Sequence record: MH791411.1
Reading direction: 5' to 3' (one strand)
Length of the DNA stretch: 64,000 bases
Positions 1 to 64,000 of the stretch are shown here, one piece after another. The translations under genes were made by a program, and so were the position numbers. The first letter of the stretch is position 1. Each line of letters starts with the position of its first letter. The notes below the pieces were generated by a model. It saw only the letters and a program-made list of their open reading frames with translations, had not been told where the DNA came from and ran no database searches.

Positions 1-332
1 TACGTGTCAAGTGTTTTTTGGAATGGTTCAAGTCTATCTGAACCACATATGAAAAGAACATCTAAGTACTTTCCATCCAGTTCTCTCATTATATCAAACA
101 GATTATCTTCTGTATAGATATTTTCTTGTACAGATGGGTAAAATCCTTCTGTATAGTACATTTTCAGTTCAGGAGGTAATGGGTTTTTGATGGCATCAGT
201 ACTGGTACTAAGGAATATTTTCAAATCAGCATTGTACTGTTCTTGTAGTGCTTGAGCTTTTTCAAACACTAAACCATGACCTCGATGTACAGGGTTAATT
301 CTTCCGAATGTCACTACGCATGTTTCTTTCAT
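1..332 (-). CDS. Cytidylyltransferase-like nucleotidyltransferase (HxGH family), 3' end outside window
   Basis: Manual translation from ATG at 332: MKETCVVTFGRINPVHRGH...ICGSDR; absent from ORF track because no stop in window. Confidence 0.8.
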   Translation of the reverse strand, partial: MKETCVVTFGRINPVHRGHGLVFEKAQALQEQYNADLKIFLSTSTDAIKNPLPPELKMYYTEGFYPSVQENIYTEDNLFDIMRELDGKYLDVLFICGSDRLEPFQKTLDT

Positions 333-853
333 ATGTTCTTCATCACCTGACCAATAGATTTAAGATGGTTGATTTTAGCTGGAGTCAAATACTTATCCAG
401 TACTATTAAACAACTAGGGAATGGAGCACTGTCAGTCTTTTTATCTGGTTCTTCAGGGATACCGAACTTTAAGCGACCTTTTATAAAACAAATACAATCA
501 CAAACTTTCGCAGCATAATCCTGAAAGGCTATAGTATCAGTTCTTGATGGTACGAGAATCAGTACTGTAGCACCTTTGTTATATGCATCAACTGCCTTAG
601 ATAACCACGTTTTCAAATCACTGTACGGTGGGTTGAGCCACACGATATTGTTTCCCCAGTCCTGTTCAAGTGAATTGTCTTCTGGTGTAAAGAAATTATC
701 ACACAATGCTGTTTCTTTAACACATGCTGCATCTAGTGTAAATCCCCAGAGTTCATCCAAATCTTCAAAGAAATCCTTTGGAGTAGTCCAGTTATCTTTC
801 CCAGTACTGAAATGTACTGATTGTTTTTTCTTCGAAGCATCCTTCTTCGACAT
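329..853 (-). CDS. Phage DNA N6-adenine methyltransferase (T1/HP1 Dam-like family)
   Basis: WTTPKDFF, FTLDAAC, VWLNPPY (motif IV), LVPSRTDT, FIKGRLKFG, SAPFPS; target sequence unknown. Confidence 0.9.
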   Translation of the reverse strand: MSKKDASKKKQSVHFSTGKDNWTTPKDFFEDLDELWGFTLDAACVKETALCDNFFTPEDNSLEQDWGNNIVWLNPPYSDLKTWLSKAVDAYNKGATVLILVPSRTDTIAFQDYAAKVCDCICFIKGRLKFGIPEEPDKKTDSAPFPSCLIVLDKYLTPAKINHLKSIGQVMKNI

Positions 854-869
854 ACATAATTTCCTTTGA

Positions 870-1415
870 TTATAGACAGTTAAGTACTATGTCATCAAAA
901 GTACTACTGTCAATGTTGTATTCATATAAAAATTTAAAATGTGATCCATAACGCATCATCAGATTAAACTCTTCTTCAGTATTAAATTTGTAATCATGAA
1001 GAGTTTCAAGGGTACATGTTAAACCTAAAAACTCAATAATTTCTGATGTTACATCATTTCCTGAATTGAAGTATTTAACCCAAACACATTTTCCTTGTGG
1101 GTTGAATTTTCTATATTCTCCTTCTAGTTCTCCATTGACGATATGTGCTTTCGCACTGATTAGATTATTACTATAACGCTCTTCGTAGTAGTTCCCATAA
1201 CGAGCTTTAAGAATTGTAGGCTTCTTGGTTGGGAATAACTTAATGGAAGTTAATTCAAAACCGCACTGCAACTCTTTGATGTACGAAATACATCCCTTTT
1301 CTTTAATCACAACAAAACCAGTAAAATTCTCTTGGTCTTGGTTCTGATTGTCTGAATCAACAAATTCTAGTGTTTTATAAGTGACGCTTTTAGATTTTTT
1401 AATAAATGACATCAT
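870..1415 (-). CDS. Hypothetical protein with MORN-variant-like repeat
   Basis: NGELEGEYRKFNPQGKCVWVKYFNSG. Confidence 0.55.
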   Translation of the reverse strand: MMSFIKKSKSVTYKTLEFVDSDNQNQDQENFTGFVVIKEKGCISYIKELQCGFELTSIKLFPTKKPTILKARYGNYYEERYSNNLISAKAHIVNGELEGEYRKFNPQGKCVWVKYFNSGNDVTSEIIEFLGLTCTLETLHDYKFNTEEEFNLMMRYGSHFKFLYEYNIDSSTFDDIVLNCL

Positions 1416-1445
1416 TATTCCTATGGAAACATCAATGACTGTACA

Positions 1446-2065
1446 TGGCGTTGACTACATCAACACCAGTCGAATTATACACGCTTCGCATGTCTAATTC
1501 GACGAAAGTACTATGATTTGTTTTAATTAATATTGACGGGGTTTGCTTGAGCATATTTCATCCCCCCCGCAGGGGAAAGAACAAAAAAAGTTTGACGCTG
1601 GTGGCCTTCACATAGTTCATATCACGAATTCTCTTACGAGGCGAAAGCGGGTTGCTCTGTTTCTCTCTATCGCGGTTCTTGTAGCAACGGTCGTCGGTCT
1701 TAAACATCCCGACACATAATACAAATACCATATGACCAGTACTTGTATTTGATTTCACGAATTTTGGACGCAACTATATTGTATAAATTACGACCGCAAA
1801 TTTCTCATGAAATCTCCCTTAGATAATTGGTAAGGTGCGATCCTTATATGTCTATCGAGGAACTCTCTTTATCCTATTGGAGTTCTTTATACAGCCGCAT
1901 TGCCGTGAGTGGTTCAAACTATGCCATCATCTAACGGGTTTCATTTGCTGTTCGTACTGAAAGGACTACTCATCTACCCTCTACTTTTCGAGTGGATTAG
2001 GCTTTAATCATTTCCATATGGAACCTTTCAGGATTAAAAAAAGGCGACAACATATTCTGCTGTCA
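1446..2065 (-). ncRNA. Candidate long structured non-coding RNA or leader
   Basis: ORF-poor; many stems with G-U pairs on minus strand (1446-1468, 1469-1503); upstream extended -10 at 2072-2077. Confidence 0.4.
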
Positions 2066-2099
2066 CCTTACATTATATCATAAACTTATGGTATGTCTC
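2036..2099 (-). terminator. Intrinsic terminator fused to a sigma70 promoter
   Basis: AAGGTGACAGC..GTTGTCGCCTT+T7; TGA-TATAAT at 2072-77, GAGACA at 2094-99. Confidence 0.7.
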
Positions 2100-2946
2100 A
2101 GTTGTATTCTGTTTTTTCAGTGAAATTAGTTAAGATATCTGCACTTAAGCTTCTCATAACCTCAATCTTACTTGGCATGAACCTGTGCTTGTTTTTTACA
2201 TACAACTCATCATCTTCAATGAAAGATGTGAACATGAATACCATATCTTCACGTGGAATTGAGAGAATATTACAGTTTTCATTTTCAGCAACAGGGGAAT
2301 CATTGTAGTACTTAGAGAATGCAGTACTTTGACGACCGATTATGATAGAATTTCGGATTAGAAAATTACTACAGTACTGAAAATCTTTGTAGTACTTGTC
2401 AAGGATATATGGCATTATCGCTTCTTTCACTTCTTCATATCCATTGGTACTATCAATTTCAGTACAATAATCTTCTCGGTCTTTTTTCCCTCGATGATTA
2501 TCAAACTCGTACTCAAAGAATAAATTTTTATTTAATGAATCATTTGAACCAACTGATCCACTATAGTATGATTTTCTATCATTCATTCGATCATCCGGGC
2601 ATGATGCATACATAGAAATGTCATGTGTTGACGTACCGATATAAATTTTCTTAGTAATGTGATTGTACGCGATGTAATCATAATCTTGTACTCCAGTTAG
2701 CATTAACTGGAACATCAATTCATCAGGAACATCAATTAACGGGTACTCAAACTTCGAATATCTACTACGACAGAAATTCTTTTCAAATGCTCGATATGCG
2801 ATGAAATCTTTTAGGTTTGTAATAGATTCATGCTCATGTGTACTACTGGTGCGTACATTGACATTAGTAGACGAGCAATACCCTTCAGATTCTTCTGCGT
2901 AGTCATAATAACCCTTACTGTAGTCAACGATTAGATAAAGTTTCAT
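2098..2946 (-). CDS. Hypothetical protein, family A motif
   Basis: DELMFQLML. Confidence 0.7.
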   Translation of the reverse strand: MKLYLIVDYSKGYYDYAEESEGYCSSTNVNVRTSSTHEHESITNLKDFIAYRAFEKNFCRSRYSKFEYPLIDVPDELMFQLMLTGVQDYDYIAYNHITKKIYIGTSTHDISMYASCPDDRMNDRKSYYSGSVGSNDSLNKNLFFEYEFDNHRGKKDREDYCTEIDSTNGYEEVKEAIMPYILDKYYKDFQYCSNFLIRNSIIIGRQSTAFSKYYNDSPVAENENCNILSIPREDMVFMFTSFIEDDELYVKNKHRFMPSKIEVMRSLSADILTNFTEKTEYN

Positions 2947-2958
2947 ATATCTCCAGAC

Positions 2959-2987
2959 AAAAAAAAGACGAGATATTATATCCCGTC
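2959..2987 (-). terminator. Intrinsic terminator with TATAAT in loop
   Basis: GACGGGA-TATAAT-ATCTCGTC-T7. Confidence 0.75.
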
Positions 2988-14023: not shown

Positions 14024-14562
14024 AATTGTACCTTCAATATTTTATCAGCAATTGATATAACCTTATCACTGAATACATTACCAATCTCAATTCTTATATA
14101 CATCGCAGGTGGAATCTTTCCCTGAAGTGCATAATATGTTTGTATACCTAAGTACTCATTATTTGATAATGAAAATTTGATTCTCTCCATATCTATGTCT
14201 GATGTTGGTAAATCTAGTAGTTCATGGTTGTAGTCAACATTTTCAGTGTATATCTGTTCGACGTAATTTGAATGATCACTACTAATGTAGATACTATCAT
14301 CACGAATAATTACTTTATAATCAGAAGGTTCAAACTTATCTTTAGGAGAAAAGAAGACATCATCTATCTTCTCTTCTCGGACACCGAATAACAATTTACC
14401 ATCGTACTTTACATCAAGCATACTACCTAGAATAGTAATTACACAATGATCATCAATATTATGACGTAAAGAACGAGTCTTGTATTTTGGGTTAATGAAA
14501 ATTTTCATTAATTTTATACAAATGTCGGCAATGCATTTTACATTATCATTTTCTATGTACAT
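14020..14562 (-). CDS. Divergent family A paralogue
   Basis: ERIKFSLSNN, weak motif. Confidence 0.55.
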   Translation of the reverse strand: MYIENDNVKCIADICIKLMKIFINPKYKTRSLRHNIDDHCVITILGSMLDVKYDGKLLFGVREEKIDDVFFSPKDKFEPSDYKVIIRDDSIYISSDHSNYVEQIYTENVDYNHELLDLPTSDIDMERIKFSLSNNEYLGIQTYYALQGKIPPAMYIRIEIGNVFSDKVISIADKILKVQL

Positions 14563-15040
14563 CGTAAATCCTCTTTAATTCTTTTACATTTTTAATGAAT
14601 ACTTTCATTGCAGAGATCTCAAAAGCTAATGATTTAAATTTGCAGTACTTTTTAAAGTACGACATAATGAATAGCATTTTGAGTTCTTTTTCTGTGTAAA
14701 TTAAACTATTTTGAAAGTAACTTTCTTCTGATAAATCATCAAGAAAAGGATATACAACTCCATTTGGAGTCAAGAACATGACACGTTCACTCCAAGATCT
14801 AAATGAAATGTAATCAGTCTTACCACATTCATATAAGGAGTTTATCATGCCATCAATCATTAAGGAGAACTCAATACTGTATCCTAATCGTTGACACTTG
14901 TATCTCTTATCTTCTTTCTTTGTAATTACAAAGTGACGACCCAATGCGTCTTTGTTATCGAAAATGAAATCAACTGTCTCTAAACACTCCTTAGCGAACT
15001 TCATAGTTTCTCTGTACTTTCGGTTCATTAGTCTCTCCAA
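14546..15040 (-). CDS. Family A paralogue
   Basis: EESYFQNSLI. Confidence 0.8.
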   Translation of the reverse strand: MERLMNRKYRETMKFAKECLETVDFIFDNKDALGRHFVITKKEDKRYKCQRLGYSIEFSLMIDGMINSLYECGKTDYISFRSWSERVMFLTPNGVVYPFLDDLSEESYFQNSLIYTEKELKMLFIMSYFKKYCKFKSLAFEISAMKVFIKNVKELKRIYDVHRK

Positions 15041-15441
15041 ACTTTACCAGGGAAGTGTTTCTCGTAGAACTCATCATCACTTAACATATAATCAGGTGTT
15101 TCTACTTCTATGGGTTTGTAGAATGTTTCTGGAATGTGTGTAATTTTATTGGGTAGTACTTTATGTTCGCGTAAAACCTTCTGTATAGCTCCTAGACGTT
15201 GTAAATCAATACAGCCCGGCAGAACTAAGCTGTACTGAAATAGCTCATCAGGGGTCATTATAGATACATCCTTGGCTTGTTTGATTTTATTGTTGGCATC
15301 AATGAATATATCAAATCCAAGTACTGCATTATAGCTTACATATGTTGTTTTGTTTTTGTCAATAGCTGCACTTAAACTATATCCATATATTCCATGTTGG
15401 TCAACAATGCATCGTTGCATAATTTTAATCATTTCGAACAT
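15028..15441 (-). CDS. Family A paralogue (short type)
   Basis: PDELFQYSLV. Confidence 0.8.
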   Translation of the reverse strand: MFEMIKIMQRCIVDQHGIYGYSLSAAIDKNKTTYVSYNAVLGFDIFIDANNKIKQAKDVSIMTPDELFQYSLVLPGCIDLQRLGAIQKVLREHKVLPNKITHIPETFYKPIEVETPDYMLSDDEFYEKHFPGKVWRD

Positions 15442-15784
15442 AATTTACCTCGTATGTGTTATAATTCCACGTTTTAACACTATCCATTTGTATATCCTGA
15501 ACTTCATGGAAATATTTAAGTACCTTCTGGTATTCCATTAGTTCGTACACATCTTCAGTATTGACAGTGCTCTCCTGAAACAATTCCTCTTCTGATAAAG
15601 TACTATAATCAGGGATTTTTATTTCAGAATATATCTCATTCATATATGAATCATTTTGGTAAATCTGTAGATAAAACTGATTATATTCAGGGATATAGGT
15701 TACGAAATGGTTCTTGATGAATTCATATCTTGAAGCAAAGCAATCATTGCCATCCGTCATGTACTGAATTGTTGTATTATGCAT
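15425..15784 (-). CDS. Family A paralogue (short type)
   Basis: EEELFQESTV. Confidence 0.8.
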   Translation of the reverse strand: MHNTTIQYMTDGNDCFASRYEFIKNHFVTYIPEYNQFYLQIYQNDSYMNEIYSEIKIPDYSTLSEEELFQESTVNTEDVYELMEYQKVLKYFHEVQDIQMDSVKTWNYNTYEVNYVRND

Positions 15785-16259
15785 TCAAATAATCCACACA
15801 TTTATAGTATACTGCTAAATCTAAAAAGAATCGTTGTTTGTATTTGTAATGATGAAGTAGTGCACCATAAAGTAATATAGCATTAAGTACTTTTGCATCA
15901 TGAATACAAGACCCTTGGAAGTACATTTCTTCTGTCATGAAAACTAACTCATTGTACGGGATAAGCACTGAATCTCTAAATGTATCAATGTTAATCTTCA
16001 AATCGGACCCTTGGCAATATGAAATATATTCACCTCGGTAATGAAAGTCATTATCGTCAAAGTACTCAGCATATACTTGATTGTCCCTATTATTTTTAAA
16101 GGCAAGTCTTCCTTTGGTTGAACTGAATTGGTCATATTGGAACATTCCACCAAAAGGCATTCCACCGAAAGGTTGGGGACTTCTGAACTCCTTTGCAATG
16201 CGATGAATGTTAGATGCAAATTCTAAAACACCATCGTAATCATATTCTGTTGTAATCAT
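15777..16259 (-). CDS. Family A paralogue
   Basis: EEMYFQGSCI. Confidence 0.8.
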   Translation of the reverse strand: MITTEYDYDGVLEFASNIHRIAKEFRSPQPFGGMPFGGMFQYDQFSSTKGRLAFKNNRDNQVYAEYFDDNDFHYRGEYISYCQGSDLKINIDTFRDSVLIPYNELVFMTEEMYFQGSCIHDAKVLNAILLYGALLHHYKYKQRFFLDLAVYYKCVDYLNA

Positions 16260-16738
16260 AGACCATTTTTCTCCATGTACTCAATGATTTCATCTACGAA
16301 GTTTAAATCCATATAGAATCTATCATCTGCGTCATTGAGTTCATCTTTAAGTACTGTAAAAATTGTAGAACTAAACACGATTCTCTCATTGTACAAAGTA
16401 CTGTACTGGAAGAATTCTTCTTCTGATCTAACATTAAATGTGTCATATTCATATTCATCATCATTAAATCTAGGATGATAGTACTTAAAACTATCAGATG
16501 TATGGAAACAATATGAGATAAAATCCCCTGATGGTGCATCGTCAAGTACACGAATACCACAGAAATTCTCATCTGTAGTATGCAACAAATTGCTATTCAT
16601 TGACAAATAATTTTTGTACGCATAAAGTGTGCATCGTGGGAGAATTATATTCTCTTTAACTGTTACAAAGAACTTATGAAGTTTAATGATATTTTGTGCG
16701 ATTTTTTGTGCATTGCTAAATGATAGGTCTTTGGACAT
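16256..16738 (-). CDS. Family A paralogue
   Basis: EEEFFQYSTL. Confidence 0.8.
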   Translation of the reverse strand: MSKDLSFSNAQKIAQNIIKLHKFFVTVKENIILPRCTLYAYKNYLSMNSNLLHTTDENFCGIRVLDDAPSGDFISYCFHTSDSFKYYHPRFNDDEYEYDTFNVRSEEEFFQYSTLYNERIVFSSTIFTVLKDELNDADDRFYMDLNFVDEIIEYMEKNGL

Positions 16739-16797
16739 TGTGATATAACCCTTTACAATTAATATAAAGAGATTATATCACAAAGATTTGGAGGGTG

Positions 16798-17388
16798 TCA
16801 AGAGTTCTCACGAAGTTCTACCATTTCTTTCCATACTAAATGGTAATCTTCTAAGTCCAGATAGAAGTCTTCATTTAAGTGCTCATATAAGTACTTGTAC
16901 ATGAATAGTACACCTAAATTGTATTCAGTATTAAGTAATGATTGTTGGAAGTAGTTTTCTTCATTTAGTTCTATATCCATGAACTCAAATCTACCTAGAC
17001 CTTTTAATGTACGTATCTCAACATGTGAAGTATCTGTTTTACTGAAGCACATGAATCCACCTCTAAATTCGGGATCATATTCACATTCATACTGTCCACT
17101 GTTATTATAGAAATCTCTATTACCATCCTTATCTTTTGGCTTAACAACTGATACGTGAAGGTCGTCATCTTTGTACATTGTACGTTCTGGCGTTTTCACA
17201 CATTTTAACTTATTTTCTTTAATGTACTTGATAATATCAATTATATCTTGTGCAGTACTGATTGCTGCCTCGAACGTATCCAACTTAAGATGATTGTATT
17301 GTGTACCCTTGTTCTTTATTTTATCTAACATACTAACCTCATAATTCATACATCTTTGATTTGAATTGCATTGGTCCACCAACTTCAC
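16798..17388 (-). CDS. Family A paralogue
   Basis: EENYFQQSLL; true start probably MNYEVS. Confidence 0.8.
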   Translation of the reverse strand: MKLVDQCNSNQRCMNYEVSMLDKIKNKGTQYNHLKLDTFEAAISTAQDIIDIIKYIKENKLKCVKTPERTMYKDDDLHVSVVKPKDKDGNRDFYNNSGQYECEYDPEFRGGFMCFSKTDTSHVEIRTLKGLGRFEFMDIELNEENYFQQSLLNTEYNLGVLFMYKYLYEHLNEDFYLDLEDYHLVWKEMVELRENS

Positions 17389-17677
17389 ATGGATAATTTT
17401 CCATAATACGATTCAAAAGTATCTGGTACTGTTGTAGTACTTCAATTTCCAAATGTATACTACTATCCAGTACTAATGACTCCTGGAACAATTCACCTGT
17501 ATCTAAACATGAAAAATCATTTATAGTTAGCATTGGCTTATCATTGGTACGCAATGTAAATGATTCCTCATTTCGGATTAATGTACAGAATTCATTATGT
17601 TTTCTGTTATAATCCATTTTAACCAATAATAACTTAGTGTGAGTTGCGTACATTATTTTTACTAATTCAGTCTTCAT
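17339..17677 (-). CDS. Family A paralogue (short type)
   Basis: TGELFQESLV. Confidence 0.8.
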   Translation of the reverse strand: MKTELVKIMYATHTKLLLVKMDYNRKHNEFCTLIRNEESFTLRTNDKPMLTINDFSCLDTGELFQESLVLDSSIHLEIEVLQQYQILLNRIMENYPCEVGGPMQFKSKMYEL

Positions 17678-18026
17678 AACGGAATAAAATTCTCCTGTAC
17701 TGCTCCGGCTTAGTACTCAATCTCTTCACCGGATAATTGTCGAAGATCCTTTTCATTTCTTTCTGGATTAAACAAAGAAAATCAAAATCACAATAGTATT
17801 TTTTATCCCATACTAAACTTTCTTGAAATAACTCATCTTCTTGCATTAGCGTAGTATCAATTGTATCTTCACGTGTATTTGAGTACGCTTCATGACATTG
17901 AAAACCATCTTCTGATAATTCTAATGTATATGCCGCCATTTCAAACATATCATCATTTGTCTTTAACGAAAGTAAACAACAAACGTATTTTTTCGTTGTG
18001 TAGTACGTAATACTAATGGTATTCAT
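17667..18026 (-). CDS. Family A paralogue (short type)
   Basis: EDELFQESLVW. Confidence 0.8.
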   Translation of the reverse strand: MNTISITYYTTKKYVCCLLSLKTNDDMFEMAAYTLELSEDGFQCHEAYSNTREDTIDTTLMQEDELFQESLVWDKKYYCDFDFLCLIQKEMKRIFDNYPVKRLSTKPEQYRRILFRYED

Positions 18027-18031
18027 GGCAT

Positions 18032-18634
18032 TTAAACCTCAGTATAAAGCTTACAATAGCTTTCATCGAAATCAAAAATACTTCTCAAGAACTGACAAAG
18101 GTCAGTAAAAATATTTACATTTGCTATATACACATTATCAAATTCTGTTCTTTCGAAGAATGTATGCATAGAATTTGTAATATATCTCATTGCAGATTCA
18201 CGCTGCATTGTTATATCATTTGTGAACATTGCATCTTCATCAGTACTGACTAATTCAATATCAAATGATTGCATATATGGGATACTCTTCCCTAGTGCAA
18301 AGCTATCACCGTATGATGCTTCAACTGCACCTTTAGAATACACCAATTGATATAAGTCCGAAATAGGGTTATAAAAAGTACGACATATTGATGAACATAA
18401 TTTATTATCTATCCAAAAGAAAACCCTATTTGTATTACCGTCAAATGCTATACGCAATCCATCACCATCTAACGATATATCACCATCGAGATTAAAAGAG
18501 AACTGAACTAATGCTTTTTCTAAGTCCATTCTTTTGTGATAAATGATTTCTTGCATATAGATAATATCATTTACTAATTTCTTAAAATACAAATGAACCT
18601 CAGTACTACAACATTTATTTGCATTTAATAACAT
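18032..18634 (-). CDS. Divergent family A paralogue
   Basis: EDAMFTNDIT, weak motif. Confidence 0.55.
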   Translation of the reverse strand: MLLNANKCCSTEVHLYFKKLVNDIIYMQEIIYHKRMDLEKALVQFSFNLDGDISLDGDGLRIAFDGNTNRVFFWIDNKLCSSICRTFYNPISDLYQLVYSKGAVEASYGDSFALGKSIPYMQSFDIELVSTDEDAMFTNDITMQRESAMRYITNSMHTFFERTEFDNVYIANVNIFTDLCQFLRSIFDFDESYCKLYTEV

Positions 18635-19221
18635 AGTAGATCCTTATACATTGCATGTATTCTTACAATGTCTCTGTAATAACTCATATCTTCACGATTA
18701 TCATTAAAAACAGTAACACTGAATACAGCAGTACTAATTGAACTATCAACAATGTACTCTTTTAATTTATTATAAAGATATATGCACTTAGTAGATGTAT
18801 CATCCCACATAAGACTATTTTGAAAGATGTTTTCTTCTGTGTTAGGATATAAGTACTGCTCAATCTTGTACTCCAATGAACTATCACAGTTTTTATATAC
18901 AGAAATAGATGGGACATTCATATTGCACATAATACTAATAACATTATCATTGTATGTAGAAATTAAACTGGTACTGGATGCTACACTTTCATCATAATTC
19001 AGTACTGAAATTCTTGCATTATCTGTGCAGTACAGATGTTTCATTCCACCTCTCATAGCCATAGTAAGAAATTTATCAGTGAACCATATTCCTTTTGTTT
19101 TCAGTATAGTTTCATGCATAAGATAAGTTTCAATGAAGATTTTTACACGCTCAAATGCCAAGTCAAGTTCATTGTACATAACGGATATCCTTCTGTAAAG
19201 AATCAATATATTCTTTAACAA
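18625..19221 (-). CDS. Family A paralogue
   Basis: EENIFQNSLM. Confidence 0.8.
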   Translation of the reverse strand: MLKNILILYRRISVMYNELDLAFERVKIFIETYLMHETILKTKGIWFTDKFLTMAMRGGMKHLYCTDNARISVLNYDESVASSTSLISTYNDNVISIMCNMNVPSISVYKNCDSSLEYKIEQYLYPNTEENIFQNSLMWDDTSTKCIYLYNKLKEYIVDSSISTAVFSVTVFNDNREDMSYYRDIVRIHAMYKDLLCY

Positions 19222-19360
19222 CTTGTTCCTGATACTGTGTGCCCAAATACATCAGTACTTTTAATTCTTTGAATTCAGTACTATATGAGTCAATTTGCAT
19301 CATTTTAGAAGAATATATATTGAATAGTTTAGCAATATCATCTTGGTCTATTATTTTCAT
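19169..19360 (-). CDS. Family B paralogue
   Basis: YLGTQYQE. Confidence 0.8.
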   Translation of the reverse strand: MKIIDQDDIAKLFNIYSSKMMQIDSYSTEFKELKVLMYLGTQYQEQVVKEYIDSLQKDIRYVQ

Positions 19361-19556
19361 ATATTCTCTTCTGGATTAGTTCCTGTAAGTGCTGAATATA
19401 ACCCTTCATTGCAACATCCTGTTTGTTAGAGCCAACGAAGAACAATAGCTTAAAGTCATGGTAATCCATTTTTGGTTTAGTAGTGAACCATATGTCCCAC
19501 ACTGCACTCACAGTTCTCATGTATTCAATTCGATTAAATGTTTTTGAATACTTCAT
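19338..19556 (-). CDS. Family B paralogue
   Basis: FVGSNKQD. Confidence 0.7.
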   Translation of the reverse strand: MKYSKTFNRIEYMRTVSAVWDIWFTTKPKMDYHDFKLLFFVGSNKQDVAMKGYIQHLQELIQKRIYENNRPR

Positions 19557-20070
19557 CGATGTTCATCGCCAATAAGTTAATATACAAATTACTGTTAAAT
19601 GCAATCTGCAATTCCATATAGAACTGAATGATAGCATAGTCAGGGTCAGTACACGATAGTTGAAAACACTGTTCGTCAAATGCATTGTAACTGTACTTAG
19701 GGATGTGAATTTCACGCTTCAAATCAGGTTGACCCCACTTCATCGCATACACACCAATGTTATTGTTCTTTTTCCTTTTCTTAAATGTTAATTGTTGAAT
19801 ATTTCCAGCGTTGTCTAGGAAAATAGTATTATTCGACACAGGTGCACCAATAGAAAACAATGATGTATCAATGACGTGTTTCTCACGTATCTCACACTTC
19901 TGGAATGCACCATTCCCTTGTAACAGTTTATGGAAATCGTACTTCTCATTAACAACAGTACTAGGATCAATTAATCCAGTACTGCATTTTTTCAGTACTG
20001 GTACGATAGTGCGAATCTTTTTTGATAAATCTTGTAATGCATCATAATCATTAATGTTAATTTTTCTCAA
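19534..20070 (-). CDS. Family A paralogue
   Basis: DEQCFQLSCT. Confidence 0.75.
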   Translation of the reverse strand: MRKININDYDALQDLSKKIRTIVPVLKKCSTGLIDPSTVVNEKYDFHKLLQGNGAFQKCEIREKHVIDTSLFSIGAPVSNNTIFLDNAGNIQQLTFKKRKKNNNIGVYAMKWGQPDLKREIHIPKYSYNAFDEQCFQLSCTDPDYAIIQFYMELQIAFNSNLYINLLAMNIDEVFKNI

Positions 20071-20513
20071 AAGGATGCCTCTTCTATAGTAACGAAATCA
20101 ACTAACCTATCAAGTTTTTCAGTGTCTAGATAAAATATATCCAGTACTGACTTCTGATATAGTACACTAAATGTACATAGATTGTCAAGTGTTCCTTCAT
20201 TATAAACAGTACTTCCCTGGAAGTACCCTTCTTCTGTACTCAGAGATAAAATATCAGAAATTTTAAAAGATTCTTCATTCTCATGACGCTCTATCGTAAC
20301 TTCATCATATTTTCTGTTCAATGAAATATAATCGTATGCTAATTCAATAGTACTACAGTTGTTGTTGCTAGTGTCAAATAAAGAATCAATTGTAATCTTC
20401 GTACCATTAGAAACTTCTCTGCGTTCATCATCTACGTATTCAGGATTTTCTTTGAAGAACTTAACAACTTTTAGAATATCATTTGCTTTCTTGATTGCAC
20501 TTTCATAACTCAT
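20067..20513 (-). CDS. Family A paralogue (MSxESA subfamily)
   Basis: EEGYFQGSTV. Confidence 0.8.
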   Translation of the reverse strand: MSYESAIKKANDILKVVKFFKENPEYVDDERREVSNGTKITIDSLFDTSNNNCSTIELAYDYISLNRKYDEVTIERHENEESFKISDILSLSTEEGYFQGSTVYNEGTLDNLCTFSVLYQKSVLDIFYLDTEKLDRLVDFVTIEEASF

Positions 20514-20952
20514 TTTTTCTGGACTCCATATATATCACCTGATTTAGTTCATATACATAATCTAAATCAATGAATATAGAATTATTAAAGTTCTCTTTCA
20601 GGAATGCATTAAAAACTACTAAAGCTCTTAACGCCCCATTTGGGTATATAGTACTGTACTGGAAGTAAGCATCTTCTGAATTTAAAAATAGTACTTCTTC
20701 TTCTGTGAATTCAAAATATTTGCCATCTTCCTCTATAGAATAGAAAGTTCCAGAATCCCATACGAAGTACTTGAATTCCAAATCATAATCATGGGACTCG
20801 TACTTATATTCATTACCTAATCCTAGTATATCTGTACCAACACTTATAGTACTAATATATGCCCCTTTATAGTCTAAGTACTTTACATTATTTTGAAAGA
20901 ACTTTACTATATTAACTAATTCTTCAGCGTGCTTAAGATCACTTTCGTACAT
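20503..20952 (-). CDS. Family A paralogue (MSxESA subfamily)
   Basis: EDAYFQYSTI. Confidence 0.8.
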   Translation of the reverse strand: MYESDLKHAEELVNIVKFFQNNVKYLDYKGAYISTISVGTDILGLGNEYKYESHDYDLEFKYFVWDSGTFYSIEEDGKYFEFTEEEVLFLNSEDAYFQYSTIYPNGALRALVVFNAFLKENFNNSIFIDLDYVYELNQVIYMESRKNEL

Positions 20953-21266
20953 TATATTTCAATCTCTATATATTTTTGGGTAATTAAGTAATCCCAGTAG
21001 TACTTCACTTGTTTTTGTATCTCAAGTAAAGCATAAAAATTAATTCTCTTATCCCATACAAGTGATTCCTGAAAAAGAAATGTTTCATGATCATCTCTGT
21101 AATCACATTCAAGGAAGTCAGGAATATAATCACAATCGTGAAGATATTCAATCATTAAAGATTCATTACATCTTCTAACGGCAAGGTGCTGGAAATTATC
21201 ATGATCGAAGAAATACATTAAACTAATTGTACCTGGAATGTACTGAATACTGTATAATAATTTCAT
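20952..21266 (-). CDS. Family A paralogue (short type)
   Basis: ETFLFQESLVW. Confidence 0.8.
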   Translation of the reverse strand: MKLLYSIQYIPGTISLMYFFDHDNFQHLAVRRCNESLMIEYLHDCDYIPDFLECDYRDDHETFLFQESLVWDKRINFYALLEIQKQVKYYWDYLITQKYIEIEI

Positions 21267-21706
21267 CGTTTACCCTTATGTGCTGCACGTACATATTCAT
21301 AATCCAAATAAAATCTTGTGCTATCAATACTTTTAAAGTACCACATAATAACTAAAGTATCTAGTACTTCATCATCATACAAAGTACTATTCTGAAAGTA
21401 ATACTCTTCACTATCCCACGGACCTTTCAGTACTTCAAAGTTCAATTTTAAAGGTCTGCTGCGATTATAAAAACGGATTTCACCACCATAAGCATAACTG
21501 ATAAATTCTGCATCTGGATTGTATTGTGAAAAATCTGCGGGACTTTTGGAATTCAGCCCAAGAATAACTGTAGTTGTGGTAAAATCACTATCCTTGTAGT
21601 AGTTACCATTCTCGGCTTTGTATACTTCTTCGAACTTCCCAGCCTTGATATCTTCAATATATACCTGTAGTTCTTTTGCTTTATCCAGAGCACTTTGTAA
21701 TGACAT
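21263..21706 (-). CDS. Family A paralogue (MSxESA subfamily)
   Basis: GPWDSEEYYFQNSTL. Confidence 0.85.
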   Translation of the reverse strand: MSLQSALDKAKELQVYIEDIKAGKFEEVYKAENGNYYKDSDFTTTTVILGLNSKSPADFSQYNPDAEFISYAYGGEIRFYNRSRPLKLNFEVLKGPWDSEEYYFQNSTLYDDEVLDTLVIMWYFKSIDSTRFYLDYEYVRAAHKGKR

Positions 21707-22172
21707 TATCTTCCCCTACAGTATTCTCTACGTATTCATAATCGAAATAGAAACTATCAGAACCAATACTTTTAAAGTACCACATAATTACAATAACATC
21801 TAATTCTTCTTCATTGTACACAGTACTGTTCTGGAAGTAATATTCTTCACTATCCCACGGACCTTCCAGTACTGAATACGGAATGATTGTGTCATAATCA
21901 TCGTAATCAGGACTGTAAATTATAATATCTTCATCTCTACAATAACTAATGTACTGATTGTACATATGATATTCACAGTCATCAGTATCACCCGTATCAG
22001 TGTGTAGTACTAACGTTTCTGCACATATCTCTGACTCATCATAATCGTCGCGGTCTTTTACAAAAAATTCAGTATCAGATGTTTTATACACACCAGGCAC
22101 TGAACCTTCTTGTACCATAATCATGTACTCATGAATCTTCTTTGCTTCTTTCAATGCACTTTCTAATGACAT
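21681..22172 (-). CDS. Family A paralogue (MSxESA subfamily)
   Basis: GPWDSEEYYFQNSTV. Confidence 0.85.
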   Translation of the reverse strand: MSLESALKEAKKIHEYMIMVQEGSVPGVYKTSDTEFFVKDRDDYDESEICAETLVLHTDTGDTDDCEYHMYNQYISYCRDEDIIIYSPDYDDYDTIIPYSVLEGPWDSEEYYFQNSTVYNEEELDVIVIMWYFKSIGSDSFYFDYEYVENTVGEDNVITKCSG

Positions 22173-22174
22173 TA

Positions 22175-22615
22175 CTAATCCCCTGTACTTAAATATTCAC
22201 ATGCTCCCCAGTCAAGGAAGAAGGGTTCAAAATTCAATTCCTTAAAGTACCACAAAACAACCAAGGAATCAAGCATTTCTTGGTTAAAAATAAGACTCTG
22301 TTGGAAGTAATACTCTTCAGTACCCCACGGCCCATCAAGTACCCCGAAGTCAACAGGTGTATTTGATGTGTCAAAAGTAATCTTAGTACCTGGAATATAT
22401 ACAAAAAAACTAGTATATTGACTACATGAAGAGTACTGTATAGTATTGTCTTTATCATGGCCCATAAGTAAAATATCATCAGAGTATGTCTTTATACCTG
22501 ATAGATAATACTCATTACCAAATGCACTTACTTTATCACCATAGAAACCACTTTTTATGTTATCGTGGAAGTGATGTATTTTGTGTGCCAGTTTAAGTGC
22601 ACTTGCTAAACTCAT
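22175..22615 (-). CDS. Family A paralogue (MSxESA subfamily)
   Basis: GPWGTEEYYFQQSLI. Confidence 0.85.
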   Translation of the reverse strand: MSLASALKLAHKIHHFHDNIKSGFYGDKVSAFGNEYYLSGIKTYSDDILLMGHDKDNTIQYSSCSQYTSFFVYIPGTKITFDTSNTPVDFGVLDGPWGTEEYYFQQSLIFNQEMLDSLVVLWYFKELNFEPFFLDWGACEYLSTGD

Positions 22616-23082: not shown

Positions 23083-23083
23083 T

Positions 23084-25428: not shown

Positions 25429-25437
25429 CAGCACCCT

Positions 25438-39814: not shown

Positions 39815-39967
39815 AGGGACTCCATTAAAAATAATATCAATCCAATAATATACGATTCATATAAAAAGTCAATAACATTTTATAAGTAATACCCCTTTAT
39901 CGAAGTCGCTAAGGTTACCCGCCCTTTAGCCCCCTACGCATTTTGCCATAGTCCAATCCCTTTTTAT

Positions 39968-40039
39968 TCATAAAAGTCAAGGGATTACCTATGCATTTTT
40001 TTAACGCTGAAGTTTAAAAATGCCTTGACTTTTTTATGA
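39968..40039. repeat. Long imperfect inverted repeat at compositional boundary
   Basis: TCATAAAAGTCAAGG..GCATTTTT..AAAAATGC-CTTGACTTTTTTATGA. Confidence 0.75.
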
Positions 40040-40063
40040 TTCAGTACTAAATCCTTTTACGCA

Positions 40064-60127: not shown

Positions 60128-60241
60128 CGTTTTAATCTCTCTTAATGTGTAGCGGGAAGTGTTCCCGCTCTCGATGTAAAACATTATACGCTTTTATCAG
60201 TACGGTGCAAGTACTTTCTACAAATACTTTTAAAATAGTTT

Positions 60242-60328
60242 TCTTTCTATATAGGAGTACTATTATTCAGTACTGCAATCATCCAGGGGAACTATCTTTC
60301 TATATAGGAGTACTATTATTCAGTACTG
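60242..60328. repeat. 34-bp direct repeat, each copy with two AGTACT
   Basis: tctttctatataggagtactattattcagtactg at 60242 and 60295. Confidence 0.9.
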
Positions 60329-60490
60329 AATCAATCCACTAAATCATCCCTATACCCCGTAAAACGTCCTCAGACGCATTCTAACGCATTAATACACATA
60401 AGCTATACATTTGCACCATTCCAATCATTCCAGGGCTTTACAGGCCGTTTAAACGCGTTAAATTATTTTCAATTATTTTGTTTTTAGGTA

Positions 60491-60860
60491 TTGACTTGAT
60501 CCTGAAAAAGCGTATAATTACTACATAGACGCGAGAAAGCGGATACCCCAGGGGGTGGGAAGATCCGTCCAAAATTCAAGATATAAAAAAAGGATACACT
60601 CCCGCACCCTAGCAGGTAAACGCACTTTCTCAGTACTGAAATATAGTACCATAGTCCGGCCCAGGATAGCAAGCAAATTAATTAAAACTTTTTTGCTTCC
60701 AGGGTATTGCTTTATTTTTCCAGTACTGTATAATAGTTCCATCAAGTCGAGAAAGACTCAAGCCCACCGGGTGCATAGTTACGCCCAAAATTCAGTACTG
60801 AAAAAATTTTTAAAAATATCCGGCCAGGCCGTTGACATTGCCCCCAGTTTATAAGATAAT
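60491..60860 (+). promoter_or_regulatory. Three tandem rightward sigma70 promoters with no downstream ORF
   Basis: TTGACT-16-TATAAT (60491), TTGCTT-16-TATAAT (60707), TTGACA-17-GATAAT (60832). Confidence 0.8.
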
Positions 60861-60956
60861 GATTCCAGATTCAGAAAAATCTAACACCAGATACTGCGGG
60901 GAAACTATCCCCACGCGGTAGGGGAACTATTGGAAAAAACAAAATAAAATTTTGAT

Positions 60957-61100
60957 TTAGCCGTCTATACTTCCAGACGTGTAACCATCTAGCCGTTTAG
61001 CCGTCCAAACGTCTAGCCATCCAGCCATCCAGAAATCTAGCCGTTTAGCCGTCTAGATGGATAGCCATCTTTACTTCCAGACTTCTGGAGGGCTAGACAT
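60957..61100. repeat. 18 in-register degenerate 8-bp units
   Basis: ttagccgt ctatactt ccagacgt gtaaccat ctagccgt ttagccgt ccaaacgt ctagccat ccagccat ... ctagacat. Confidence 0.85.
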
Positions 61101-61267
61101 ATCTACGCCCAAAATCCATCCAGGGTAACTACGCCCAAAATCCGTCAGTACTATACCATAGATCTATCTTTTGAAAGGGAGTATTCAGTACTGCCATCAT
61201 AGCCCTCACTATGTTACCCTAGGAGGATGAAGACCATCATGTAGTACTGAATACTGTTAGAGGGAAT

Positions 61268-61287
61268 CCACCAGCTTGTGCTGGTGG
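61268..61287. other. Back-to-back Chi sites (CCACCAGC-TTGT-GCTGGTGG)
   Basis: Exact Chi octamer on both strands; further Chi at 41272, 43074, 44978, 47326, 48575, 49525, 50035, 54314 (minus strand) and 54376, 1597 (plus strand). Confidence 0.85.
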
Positions 61288-62166
61288 CATAATGCTTTAG
61301 ATTAAAATCAGTACTGACACCATTCTGTTAATATCAGTACTGTTATTACGATTTTCATATGAGGTTCAAAAAGATGTACCACCACAGGAGGAACTATCTT
61401 TTCTGTACTGTCTCACGACAGGAGGTAGAGTAAATGAATTGTTCGCAGCAACTCATCACCCTATGTAGAACATTATACAGTACTGAATCATAAAGTCAAT
61501 AACTTTCTTTCATCTTTCAGTACTGATATTCTTGAGAACTACCCGACTACAAACATCATTATATCCCACAAATCATAAACGTCCCAACGTAAATTTCAAC
61601 TTTCGAAGATCCAACTTTTATTTCATAGGTACTCCAAAATTTTTAGGATCGAGATTTAGGATGGAGTACTAACCAACTTTTTGCTGGAGCCTCAAGGGGT
61701 AATGGAATTTTACCCCGAAGGGTAAAGGGGTAATTGAAATTAAGGTGAAAGTAATAATTCAGTACTAATCATTGCGTGATTACTTTTGATTACATTTGAT
61801 GTAATTTGCAAAATGGAAAAGGAGCTTGGAAACTACAAAGTACGGCAGACTTCCTCTGCCTACTTAGTGGGATATCGCCACCTTCAGTACTGAATACTTT
61901 TAGGGCAGTACTGAATCCTTCCCTAGCATTCTTGAGTAATCTTGTCTATAATAATCAGTACTGAATCATATATAATCATTCTGTGATTCTACGGTGCTCA
62001 TATAAATGTTTATATATGATTACTTATGACTACATATGATTACGGGGTTTAGCCTGGGGAGAATCCTAGTGATCGCATTTGTCCAGGCTGAATTTTAACA
62101 ATTCTTCTAATTGTTAAAGCCTGTCCAATGCTTTCCCTGCGGAGCTTCCCCTGTCTATATGTTGAA

Positions 62167-62969: not shown

Positions 62970-62970
62970 A

Positions 62971-63159
62971 TCAGTACCTATATATTAGGGCGAGAATGTA
63001 GTACAGTTTATATGTATTATAATCTGGGTTGATAGCACATAGTGTGTGGTAGTGGAATTGTTTGGTATTTTTCTTATCCTTGATATCTATTGGGTTTAGT
63101 GGTATAAGCATTTGGGAGTTTAGTTCCAGATGGTTTAAGTAGAATTCTTTGTTATTCAT
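62971..63159 (-). CDS. Family C paralogue
   Basis: NKEFYLNHL. Confidence 0.75.
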   Translation of the reverse strand: MNNKEFYLNHLELNSQMLIPLNPIDIKDKKNTKQFHYHTLCAINPDYNTYKLYYILALIYRY

Positions 63160-63358
63160 AGAAGAATATTAGTCCCATTACGCCTGAGTACTGAATATTT
63201 TTGTTATTGTTTTCTAAAGCTTCTAGAGTAATACGTATACAATTATTAAAGCAATCTCTGGCGTGTGGTGTATCTAAACTTAAAGGTGATACACTCCTTA
63301 GAAACATTTGTTCTGATGCACTGAGGTGTTTGGTGTAAAATTCTTTCTGTTCGTTCAT
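63152..63358 (-). CDS. Family C paralogue
   Basis: QKEFYTKHL; close copy of 62569. Confidence 0.75.
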   Translation of the reverse strand: MNEQKEFYTKHLSASEQMFLRSVSPLSLDTPHARDCFNNCIRITLEALENNNKNIQYSGVMGLIFFYE

Positions 63359-63368
63359 ATTGGCCTCT

Positions 63369-63602
63369 TTAGTACACGAAAGCTAGGTACAGGGTATGAT
63401 ACAGTACTCGATGATAGCTATCAAAATCTAGTATACATGCTTTAGTGCACATAGTAAAGTACACTTTATCGTTTTGAGCATTGATACCGCGAGGTTTATC
63501 TAATAGATTAGTACTGAGGTACATTGGGAAATATTTTGTGTAGTATTCTTTATGCATATTAGTACCTGAATATAAGTAGGATAGTGTTATATAATTGGTC
63601 AT
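63369..63602 (-). CDS. Family C paralogue
   Basis: HKEYYTKYFP; true start probably MHKEYY. Confidence 0.7.
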   Translation of the reverse strand: MTNYITLSYLYSGTNMHKEYYTKYFPMYLSTNLLDKPRGINAQNDKVYFTMCTKACILDFDSYHRVLYHTLYLAFVY

Positions 63603-63747
63603 AGCTACTACTATTTTCTATACTGCGTTCTATGCAATTATTGAATCCCAGTACTGCCAAATCGTTATCCAGGGGGACTTTATATCTGGCGTAGTGTTCA
63701 AAAATACTGGGGAGAAATTGTGTGTAGTATTCTTTGTGGTTGTTCAT
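63559..63747 (-). CDS. Family C paralogue
   Basis: HKEYYTQFLP. Confidence 0.75.
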   Translation of the reverse strand: MNNHKEYYTQFLPSIFEHYARYKVPLDNDLAVLGFNNCIERSIENSSSYDQLYNTILLIFRY

Positions 63748-63748
63748 A

Positions 63749-63940
63749 TTAGTACTTATATATTAGTAAAAGGATGTGATACAGTACTCTATTATAGTCC
63801 TCAATATCTATCGAGGATTTAGTGCACTTAATGAAATAGTCTTTTTCGTAGTCTTTTTCTATACTCAATTGTTTTGTTGGTACAAGGTGTTGGAGATACA
63901 TTGGGAGTTTCTCTATGTAGTATTCTTTGTGGTTATTCAT
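63749..63940 (-). CDS. Family C paralogue
   Basis: HKEYYIEKLP. Confidence 0.75.
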   Translation of the reverse strand: MNNHKEYYIEKLPMYLQHLVPTKQLSIEKDYEKDYFIKCTKSSIDIEDYNRVLYHILLLIYKY

Positions 63941-63948
63941 ATTATGTG

Positions 63949-64000
63949 TTATTTCGTGAAAACAAGGGTTAGTACTGCATAGTACAAGTCATACGTATCT
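63949..64000 (-). CDS. Family C paralogue, partial (5' end outside window)
   Basis: Manual: ..DTYDLYYAVLTLVFTK*. Confidence 0.6.
   Translation of the reverse strand, partial: DTYDLYYAVLTLVFTK

Follow-up and report, generated by a model that had tools for sequence, protein, structure and literature searches.

The palindrome AGTACT, iterated, selected and coupled to loss of GCGC in Escherichia jumbo phage Ecwhy_1 and its relatives, as a putative protein-binding site

An iterated palindrome in the Ecwhy_1 genome

The window analysed here, 64,000 nucleotides in length, corresponds to positions 248001-312000 of the 354.5-kb genome of Escherichia phage Ecwhy_1 (MH791411), a 121Q/RaK2-type jumbo phage infecting E. 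coli. It contains the following features (coordinates are those of the window):

1-64000, no strand: AGTACT, 275 copies with the consensus T-N-C-AGTACT-G-N-A (counts and flank profiles)
329-853, minus strand: phage N6-adenine DNA methyltransferase, Ecwhy1_356 (PF05869 profile match)
24481-32465, minus strand: region B, 7,985 bp with about 20 genes, free of AGTACT, GTAC normal to high (motif counts)
34521-40042, minus strand: region D, 5,522 bp, free of AGTACT, GTAC at the background of 2/kb (motif counts)
39912-60904, no strand: direct terminal repeat of about 20,993 bp, which is the early-gene region, a single collapsed copy in MH791411
40803-61477, minus strand: 31 strong early promoters of the sigma-70 type (TTGaCA/TTGCAa and TATAAT with a spacer of 16-18 bp)
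60185-62166, no strand: control region without genes at the repeat's inner end, 12 AGTACT/kb
60962-61113, no strand: array of 8-bp iterons, CGTCTAGC / CATCCAGC / CGTTTAGC

The original prediction described AGTACT as a highly iterated palindrome, and the positions it listed (65, 198, 399, 561, 803, 883 and 900 within 1-1000, and 12 copies in 61001-62000) are all correct. The iteration turns out to be even stronger than it proposed, as the 275 copies compare with 18.2 ± 4.3 (maximum 29) in dinucleotide-preserving shuffles, a 15-fold excess. Within coding sequence, 194 copies are found versus 52.9 ± 6.4 after shuffling of synonymous codons with every protein kept, and 22.2 ± 4.6 after codon permutation, so the excess remains 3.7- to 8.7-fold under codon-preserving null models, and all three reading frames are used (57/42/71). 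Since it persists under the dinucleotide, synonymous-codon and codon-permutation nulls, a purely statistical origin in codon usage, composition or avoidance of many other palindromes is refuted and retains next to no probability. Many palindromes are indeed avoided (of the 64 palindromic hexamers, 26 are missing from the window), which makes the predicted contrast with palindrome avoidance genuine and would force a slight rise in other words, but a 15-fold excess lies far above such compensation and is the opposite of the under-representation that marks restriction-site avoidance. Moreover, T4 and PA5oct, of similar G+C, show no AGTACT excess and do not share its pattern with GCGC loss (see below).

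Over the whole 354.5-kb genome, AGTACT occurs 986 times (2.8/kb), and each of its pieces of 48-50 kb carries 99-139 copies versus 13-18 expected. The overall excess in Ecwhy_1 and its relatives is about ten times chance. The motif had been called genome-wide, which holds for this count, but two site-free stretches (24,481-32,465 and 34,521-40,042) had been missed. Elsewhere in the window, density ranges from 4.2/kb (1-24.5 kb) to 7/kb (32.5-34.5 kb) and 6.5/kb (40-64 kb). Structural and replication genes have 2/kb. Approximately 62% of the copies in the window are intragenic, with a density outside genes about twice that inside. The intragenic spacing is Poisson-like, and neither helical phasing nor a regular interval of the kind seen in cooperative arrays was found.

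The bases around the motif are not random either. In the window, C precedes 49% of the sites and G follows 45%; these preferences are symmetric and graded, and coding sites do not differ in them from non-coding ones, position -1 being C in 45-50% of cases and G in 4-8%, with T preferred at -3. In control regions the graded palindromic flanks extend the dyad to 12-16 bp. Such dyad symmetry with graded, extended flanks is what operators of dimeric regulators display. The complete 8-mer CAGTACTG, which had been taken as the usual form, is found at 67 of the 275 sites (24%), and that wording was therefore too strong.

Comparison with phage 121Q reveals that the enrichment is held by selection. There, 69.5% of the Ecwhy_1 sites are intact versus 40-41% of control hexamers, leaving about 30% of the sites that differ between the two phages. 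Third codon positions are 88% identical within AGTACT and 72% outside, i.e., they change 2.4 times more slowly within the sites, and site decay altogether is 2.3-2.4 times slower than in controls, third codon positions included. The Poisson-like spacing would fit selection on density, by analogy with Chi or uptake sequences. A mutational origin is disfavored because the one-off neighbors of AGTACT are not depleted (nine classes, observed/expected 0.62-2.70; 1.45 for AGCACT/AGTGCT).

Early promoters, terminal repeat and site-free regions

AGTACT reaches its highest density in the terminal repeat. A repeat of 20,993 bp was determined by PhageTerm and digests in fEgEco12 (PMC13070987), a 97%-identical phage, and its coordinates map exactly onto the Ecwhy_1 window. 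The records of WPEC3 and WPEC5 begin at window position 39,912, and the same segment is present in two copies within records of 368-384 kb.

The 31 early promoters show a fixed arrangement of the motif. In 16 of them AGTACT starts 27 bp upstream of the -10 hexamer and abuts the -35 element (AAAGTAC|TTGCAA), and in 13 it starts 7 bp upstream and abuts the -10 element (cAGTACTG|TATAAT). Altogether, 25 promoters have at least one site at -27 or -7, where approximately 0.2 are expected per offset, and promoters with both have the pair 20 bp apart. This layout recurs in RaK2 as well as in L020 and L073, two jumbo relatives that are uncultured. A fixed position overlapping core promoter elements is, again, a property of operators bound by dimeric regulators. 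In the gene-free control region, palindromes of 12-16 bp with the pattern (TA)TTCAGTACTGAA(TA) lie together with several promoters, and the GC skew turns. The iteron array, which is devoid of AGTACT, lies 58 bp outside the repeat boundary and is a candidate recognition array for packaging or replication.

Regions B and D are the only multi-kb parts of the Ecwhy_1 genome that are free of AGTACT. Among the 81 GTAC of region B, 71 are preceded by T on the plus strand and none by A, and the coding strand therefore carries GTACA/AGTACA at about 5/kb. The plus strand of this region lacks any 5'-AGTAC, a strand-specific one-base variant thus replacing AGTACT, and the pattern is also present in phage 121Q. 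Region D, which abuts the terminal repeat, is made of around 25 tandem paralogous genes of 65-90 aa (array at 34,109-39,814).

Absence of GCGC and a Leclercia prophage

The tetramer GCGC is absent from the entire 354.5-kb Ecwhy_1 genome, as well as from the genome pieces of 121Q, RaK2, GAP32, XbC2 and fHe-Yen9-04. GTGC and GCAC are mildly raised (1.2- to 1.4-fold). AGTACT excess and GCGC absence occur together in jumbo phages of four genera and also in a Leclercia prophage of 33 kb that is unrelated to them, a temperate siphovirus in which AGTACT is enriched 13.5-fold; on the Leclercia chromosomes, the densities of both words step sharply at the prophage ends. Likewise, GCGC is zero in all IMG/VR loci that are 3 kb or longer and whose AGTACT density reaches 2.4/kb. 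A 50-kb sample of E. coli K-12 contains 0.06 AGTACT and 6.8 GCGC per kb.

In the Leclercia prophage, no methyltransferase domain was found among the called genes, and the promoter arrangement of the jumbo phages was looked for and not found. Jumbo phages and prophage have no detectably shared accessory protein; one common trans-factor is therefore not established, and the two groups may read AGTACT differently.

What may read AGTACT

The original prediction offered two readings, a site marked by the methyltransferase at 329-853 or a site bound by a phage protein. This open reading frame does encode an adenine methyltransferase, as proposed: it matches PF05869 with 114.3 bits (cut-off 28.1, E 6e-33), and TIGR01712 with 91.8 bits, just below the cut-off of 97.05. 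Membership in these families gives no sequence specificity, and we found no solved relative of the enzyme. The link to AGTACT, however, is unsupported because the Leclercia prophage is enriched and has no recognizable methyltransferase. The protein-bound option fits better, given the graded flanks and the fixed placement at -35 and -10. Compaction, one of the roles suggested for such a protein, finds no support, since the annotated "DNA condensation proteins" of Ecwhy_1 are RCC1-repeat propellers.

We consider it most likely, though tentatively for the explanation as a whole, that AGTACT, with the optimum (TA)TTCAGTACTGAA(TA), is the putative recognition sequence of a protein that binds double-stranded DNA as a symmetric dimer and would act at two levels. 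At early promoters, the protein on sites 20 bp apart, at -35 and -10, would control the host RNA polymerase, in the simplest form by shutting off early transcription. At the level of the genome, the approximately 1,000 weakly selected and randomly spaced copies could mark phage DNA as self. The absence of GCGC would form the complementary, non-self side, as though an activity directed at GCGC were free to attack other DNA. Enrichment, selection, promoter placement, the coupling with GCGC loss and the phylogenetic spread are observed, whereas the reader and its action are inferred, and a GCGC-directed nuclease is entirely conjectural. The phage probably encodes the binder or brings it along in the virion, a host protein being less likely. 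Domain searches of the 55 open reading frames in the terminal repeat and its right flank returned no recognizable DNA-binding domain. A simple symmetric binder leaves regions B and D unaccounted for, along with the strand-specific GTACA of region B.

Methylation of AGTACT or GTAC by the 329-853 enzyme, a phage C5 methyltransferase or a host enzyme might instead time the early promoters and mark self, its state separating parental from replicated DNA at those promoters. Ecwhy_1 encodes a C5 methyltransferase besides the PF05869 enzyme, methylation of RaK2 DNA and its resistance to many enzymes have been reported (PMC3622015), and sites overlapping the -35 and -10 could render promoters methylation-sensitive. 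Yet we regard this as unlikely, as it does not accommodate the enriched prophage, the flanks are graded to ±5 where enzymes of the restriction-modification type normally read a sharply bounded site, and methylation accounts for tolerance of the sites but not for a selected 10- to 15-fold excess. Furthermore, EcoRI, HindIII, NsiI and ClaI cut fEgEco12 virion DNA normally (PMC13070987), several adenine-methylation-sensitive enzymes among them, which excludes blanket adenine methylation and bears on that alone, not on AGTACT. A nuclease target appears improbable, whether for low-frequency cuts feeding recombination-dependent replication or for T5-like strand-specific nicks: 6-bp palindromes are the recognition type of type II-like enzymes, hemi-sites in region B (AGTAC on one strand) would give strand-specific nicking, the long terminal repeat resembles that of T5 and Ecwhy_1 encodes HNH endonucleases, but promoter-fixed positions and extended palindromic flanks are unexpected in such a target, the enriched temperate siphovirus replicates in quite a different style and the fEgEco12 restriction patterns match an intact linear genome (PMC13070987).

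A neutral bias of mutation or repair is very improbable. It would make AGTACT a by-product of a GCGC purge, G(m5C)GC becoming GTAC once both methylated cytosines deaminate, or of repair of the very-short-patch type favoring AGTACT, and it could draw on the constant company of AGTACT excess and GCGC absence, the raised GTGC and GCAC, the Poisson-like spacing and the site differences between Ecwhy_1 and 121Q. Against this, the one-step precursors AGCACT/AGTGCT lack the depletion that deamination or very-short-patch repair entails, the approximately 57 GCGC missing per 92 kb are too few for some 600 excess GTAC, a mutational sink would leave decay unslowed, and the C/G and T/A preferences of the flanks, the promoter offsets and regions B and D are unaccounted for. 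Hardly credible, finally, is a mere promoter element read by the host RNA polymerase as an upstream or spacer element, with the intragenic copies as noise or decayed promoters; the sites in 25 of the 31 early promoters and the layout kept across genera agree with it, but not the intragenic majority in all frames, the selection on the sites as a class, the 2/kb in structural and replication genes, or the prophage enriched in the absence of this layout.

Returning to the putative binding site, we would extend it, as a joint and rather doubtful proposal, to a two-word self/non-self code in RaK2-type phages, in which AGTACT read by a phage protein, together with zero GCGC, replaces base modification, and which the Leclercia siphovirus has converged on or mimics. 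If so, the AGTACT reader would confer protection, early-promoter control and genome identity, a GCGC-directed activity could destroy host and competitor DNA, and the siphovirus would possibly survive or exploit infection by jumbo phages.

Among known systems, HIP1 (GCGATCGC) of cyanobacteria is comparable as a short palindrome found about once or more per kb genome-wide, in coding and non-coding DNA and above codon-based expectation. AGTACT, being iterated, selected and clade-wide, is therefore HIP1-like in its statistics, as had been proposed. Methylation-based marking has been suggested for HIP1, and to our knowledge neither word has an agreed function. The carriers of AGTACT, however, are enterobacterial phages and not cyanobacterial chromosomes, one of their lineages has no recognizable methyltransferase, and the word differs from HIP1 by a hexamer core with graded flanks, fixed promoter positions and coupled loss of GCGC. 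Chi and the uptake sequences USS/DUS of Haemophilus and Neisseria share a density in self DNA far above that in foreign DNA (about 45-fold for AGTACT, 2.8/kb versus 0.06/kb in the 50 kb of K-12), turnover of sites at a kept density and near-random spacing, but they are asymmetric and read by RecBCD or the competence pilus, whereas AGTACT is palindromic and its reader putative. We know of no density-selected self-recognition word in a phage. The dyad sites overlapping core elements of early promoters recall SPO1 TF1 and operators of the Arc, LexA or TetR style, and this overlap is where a phage protein could stop early transcription and show a preference for phage over host DNA; yet TF1 reads hydroxymethyluracil-containing DNA and not a sequence word, and a genome has a few classical operators versus about 1,000, mostly intragenic, AGTACT sites. 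The SlmA-binding site of E. coli, GTGAGTACTCAC, has the same central AGTACT. We rejected identity with it, as its GTGAG...CTCAC flanks are unmatched (GAGTACTC and GTNAGNNCTNAC both occur zero times in 92 kb) and G is the least frequent base at position -1 of the phage sites (4-8%). Finally, pandoravirus genomes totally lack AGCT (bioRxiv 10.1101/712018), likewise a palindromic tetramer missing from very large viral genomes for a cause not identified; here, the word and the virus group are different, and the loss of GCGC is tied to an over-represented palindrome and recurs in an unrelated temperate phage.

Excess of AGTACT and absence of GCGC in Ecwhy_1 and its relatives

The window is 100% identical to positions 248,001-312,000 of Escherichia phage Ecwhy_1 (MH791411.1; 354,537 bp), which belongs to Asteriusvirus within the 121Q/PBECO4/RaK2 group, and all of its annotated genes, nearly all hypothetical, lie on the minus strand. 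AGTACT is by far its most enriched hexamer, with 275 copies versus 18.2 ± 4.3 (maximum 29) in dinucleotide-preserving shuffles; the GTAC core is in 3.2-fold excess (646 versus 202), and the 8-mer CAGTACTG is present in 67 copies versus 0.7 expected. Coding sequences contain 194 sites, versus 52.9 ± 6.4 upon within-gene shuffling of synonymous codons and 22.2 ± 4.6 upon codon permutation, and these three nulls (dinucleotide, synonymous-codon, codon-permutation) rule out a codon or composition artefact. Sites are found in all three reading frames, at a density about twice as high outside genes as inside. The over-representation put forward in the original prediction, whose quoted AGTACT positions are all correct, therefore stands against codon-preserving shuffles. 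Its genome-wide spread is borne out by direct motif counts: Ecwhy_1 carries 986 AGTACT in total, and each 48-50-kb piece, structural and replication modules included, has 99-139 versus 13-18 expected, the widest site-free gap in these pieces being ∼2 kb. Short palindromes are typically shunned by phages, and the window lacks 26 of the 64 palindromic hexamers altogether, as is usual under restriction avoidance.

The tetramer GCGC is absent from the whole 354.5-kb Ecwhy_1 genome and from every piece of RaK2-type phages examined (121Q, RaK2, GAP32, XbC2, and fHe-Yen9-04); its counts are normal in T4, PA5oct, and E. coli, and its absence accompanies the AGTACT excess in every case examined. In GAP32, CAGTACTG is also frequent (13 copies versus 0.63 expected).

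Table. AGTACT and GCGC in sampled phage genomes (observed, versus expected where given).
121Q (Asteriusvirus), 48 kb: AGTACT 150 versus 12; GCGC 0
RaK2 (Alcyoneusvirus), 50 kb: AGTACT 114 versus 10.8; GCGC 0 versus 19
GAP32 (Mimasvirus), 50 kb: AGTACT 114; GCGC 0
XbC2 (Mimasvirus), 12 kb: AGTACT 27 versus 3.2; GCGC 0 versus 15
fHe-Yen9-04 (Eneladusvirus), 12 kb: AGTACT 29 versus 2.5; GCGC 0 versus 6.9
T4, 20 kb: AGTACT 2 versus 3.7; GCGC 27 versus 30.6
PA5oct (distant relative, Pseudomonas), 20 kb: AGTACT 0 versus 6.0; GCGC 14 versus 17.9

A host-determined cause, at least in its simple version, was rejected, as T4 lacks the pattern on the same host and XbC2, isolated on Xanthomonas, has it. 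Scanning IMG/VR for paired CAGTACTG yielded 116 loci. GCGC was missing from all those of at least 3 kb with at least 2.4 AGTACT/kb (versus 3-31 expected), and most AGTACT-poor loci among the matches listed had ordinary GCGC counts. With 0.06 AGTACT/kb and 6.8 GCGC/kb in 50 kb sampled from E. coli K-12, phage and host DNA are thus parted very cleanly by two words, and the pair makes a simple computational marker for such phages in metagenomes. The nearest published parallel is the absence of AGCT from pandoraviruses (bioRxiv 10.1101/712018), which resembles the GCGC loss in that a tetramer is missing. We found no prior report of the AGTACT excess and GCGC loss in the searchable literature: neither is mentioned in the papers describing the RaK2, CBB, Sharanji, and fEgEco12 genomes, and searches on the motif, ScaI, GCGC loss, and the methylomes of these phages returned nothing relevant. 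Other words are strongly depleted in the window and a further Ecwhy_1 piece (L002), namely GAGAC/GTCTC (25 versus 94), AGAC/GTCT (259 versus 559), GTCAC/GTGAC (45 versus 134), and CTAG (about 0.5-fold).

Terminal repeat, early promoters and site-free regions

The following features of the window are needed here.
9,647-33,866, minus strand: paralogue family of 11 members
14,546-23,575, minus strand: paralogue family of 7 members
24,481-32,465: region B, without AGTACT
34,109-39,814, minus strand: tandem array of ∼25 paralogous genes of 65-90 aa
34,521-40,042: region D, without AGTACT
39,912-60,904: counterpart of the terminal repeat
60,962-61,113: ∼19 tandem 8-bp iterons (CGTCTAGC / CATCCAGC / CGTTTAGC), 58 bp beyond the inner end of the terminal repeat

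A direct terminal repeat of 20,993 bp was established by PhageTerm and restriction digests in fEgEco12 (97% ANI) (PMC13070987), and the segment 39,912-60,904 is its exact counterpart, collapsed here to one copy. The larger records WPEC3 and WPEC5 begin at 39,912 and contain this segment twice; in all three phages a physical genome end lies at this position. AGTACT thus reaches its highest density in the window (6.5/kb) in the terminal repeat, where the early genes lie. The iterons, a possible recognition array for packaging or replication, sit in a 2-kb gene-free region with a GC-skew turn. CCAGGG is enriched (23 versus 2.6), mostly within short G+C-rich segments that follow promoters at 60.3-61.2 kb and might be small RNAs. 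The E. coli Chi octamer GCTGGTGG has at least two copies, at about 47,300 and about 61,270, one of which directly adjoins AGTACT as TTTGCTGGTGGCTAGTACTG on the minus strand. Among 55 ORFs scanned in the terminal repeat and its right flank (40,064-64,774), one has a ParE-like toxin domain (E 6e-11), one a DksA/TraR zinc finger, and one a GNAT acetyltransferase domain.

A simple -35/-10 scan of the minus strand between 40.8 and 61.5 kb called 31 strong sigma-70-type promoters. In 16 of them, the first base of AGTACT lies exactly 27 bp ahead of the -10 hexamer (AAAGTAC/TTGCAA, with one base common to the site and the -35), and in 13 it lies exactly 7 bp ahead (cAGTACTG/TATAAT); 25 of the 31 have at least one of these placements, versus a chance expectation of ∼0.2 per offset. 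This layout explains why AGTACT pairs 20-24 bp apart are in excess in the window, and it recurs in RaK2 (L037) and in two uncultured jumbo relatives (L020 and L073). That AGTACT is purely a promoter element for RNA polymerase is, in our judgment, extremely unlikely.

Regions B and D are the only multi-kb AGTACT-free stretches in the genome. Both sit immediately inward of the right-hand repeat copy and, following transcription, directly downstream of the early promoters. Region B still has ∼10 GTAC/kb, preceded on the plus strand by T in 71 of 81 cases and by A in none, so that the coding strand has GTACA/AGTACA and the other strand lacks 5'-AGTAC. The same pattern is repeated in the independently sequenced 121Q, which eliminates an assembly or base-calling artefact. 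In region D, which is occupied by the array of ∼25 small genes, GTAC is at background. No member of the three paralogue families has a known function, and neither region is accounted for by any model.

An unrelated prophage with the AGTACT/GCGC signature

Of the 116 IMG/VR loci, 28 derive from a temperate siphovirus of ∼33.5 kb, which encodes a lambda-type GpA terminase, a tape-measure protein, a J-like tail tip, and a large serine recombinase, with no recognisable replication or repressor module. Leclercia tamurae and a second Leclercia genome carry it as a prophage (L129 1-16,500; L131; L133 1-17,150). The prophage carries 144 AGTACT in 34.5 kb (13.5-fold) and no GCGC versus 66 expected, and both densities change sharply at its two junctions with the chromosome. 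C precedes AGTACT in 58% of its sites, a preference as in the jumbo phages, and its set of zero-copy palindromic hexamers is largely theirs. GGACC is also absent from it. That an unrelated prophage bears the signature too points to mimicry or to a selective agent common to both lineages.

No accessory protein common to the jumbo phages and the prophage was detected. A shared trans-factor was searched for by tblastn against about a quarter of Ecwhy_1 and pieces of relatives, with negative results; the HNH-AP2 endonuclease of the prophage was dismissed as belonging to a widespread homing family (1,608 phage records), and its DUF2971 and 445-aa proteins as having no RaK2-type homologues. Pfam gave no matches for the small prophage proteins. 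Neither the -27/-7 layout of the jumbo phages nor T4-type late promoters (TATAAATA) were found in the prophage, and the latter result disposes of late-promoter mimicry, which might have been a sign that the prophage depends on a jumbo phage. The shared signature in this siphovirus is not accounted for by any model.

Selection on the sites and a putative reader

Over 32.5 kb of the window aligned to 121Q (82.5% identity), that phage retains 73 of 105 AGTACT sites (69.5%), versus 41.2% of hexamers overall and 39.7% of those matched for composition. Third codon positions are 88.1% identical within sites versus 71.7% elsewhere, and this slower change indicates a constraint on DNA, not on proteins. 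About 30% of the sites are lineage-specific between Ecwhy_1 and 121Q, and spacing within genes follows a Poisson-like pattern, in which neither helical phasing nor regularity was found. Retention, third-position constraint, turnover, and spacing combined suggest weak selection on many individual sites, keeping density up. We regard it as very unlikely that AGTACT is a mutational by-product, for instance of biased repair or of a deamination funnel from GCGC: words one mismatch away, in nine classes, show no depletion (observed/expected 0.62-2.70), the missing GCGC are too few to be the source of the excess, and existing sites are lost more slowly.

The flanks of AGTACT are symmetric and graded, -1 being C in 45-50% and G in just 4-8% of sites and -3 favouring T, with identical preferences in coding and non-coding sites. 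In the gene-free part at 60.2-62.2 kb (12 sites/kb), the motif widens to palindromes of 12-16 bp such as TATTCAGTACTGAATA. Judged from sequence, this is the pattern that a dimeric DNA-binding protein would produce; a restriction-modification enzyme has a sharply bounded site rather than graded flanks. That AGTACT is instead the target of a nuclease seems quite improbable to us.

The original prediction compared AGTACT to HIP1 and, as one of two options, tied it to the N6-adenine methyltransferase encoded at 329-853. The likeness holds for the iterated-palindrome statistics, which are comparable, but the tie to the enzyme finds no support. The product of 329-853 is indeed a PF05869/TIGR01712 phage adenine methyltransferase, for which no solved structural relative was found; yet the Leclercia prophage is equally enriched, and no methyltransferase domain was found among its genes. 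Moreover, ten enzymes, among them EcoRI, HindIII, NsiI, and ClaI, cut DNA from fEgEco12 virions as predicted (PMC13070987), which excludes blanket adenine methylation, though blanket methylation only and not that of AGTACT itself. An epigenetic mark is an unlikely reading. Because of this prophage, of the normal digests, and of a methyltransferase family that does not point to any particular motif, we tentatively favour, at somewhat less than an even call, a putative dimeric protein that would read AGTACT. It would act on operators at early promoters, the density of sites across the genome would serve as a selected mark of self, and the absence of GCGC would form the complementary, non-self side. 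This phage clade of 350 kb avoids dozens of palindromes yet keeps ∼1,000 selected AGTACT, in early promoters too, and has eliminated GCGC. If a protein reads these sites, they would constitute a sequence-based genome identity system, suggesting how large phages with unmodified DNA distinguish their own from host DNA and offering a way into early-gene control in a group of phages that is little understood and relevant to therapy.

Among candidate binders, SlmA was discarded because the flanks of its sites do not match, and a domain scan of the 55 early ORFs found no DNA-binding domains. The annotated "DNA condensation proteins" were set aside as well. These genes, about ten in number (L002 24,881-38,251; record 314,881-328,251), encode RCC1-repeat beta-propellers, and their label, which appears to derive from "regulator of chromosome condensation", is no evidence of DNA binding.
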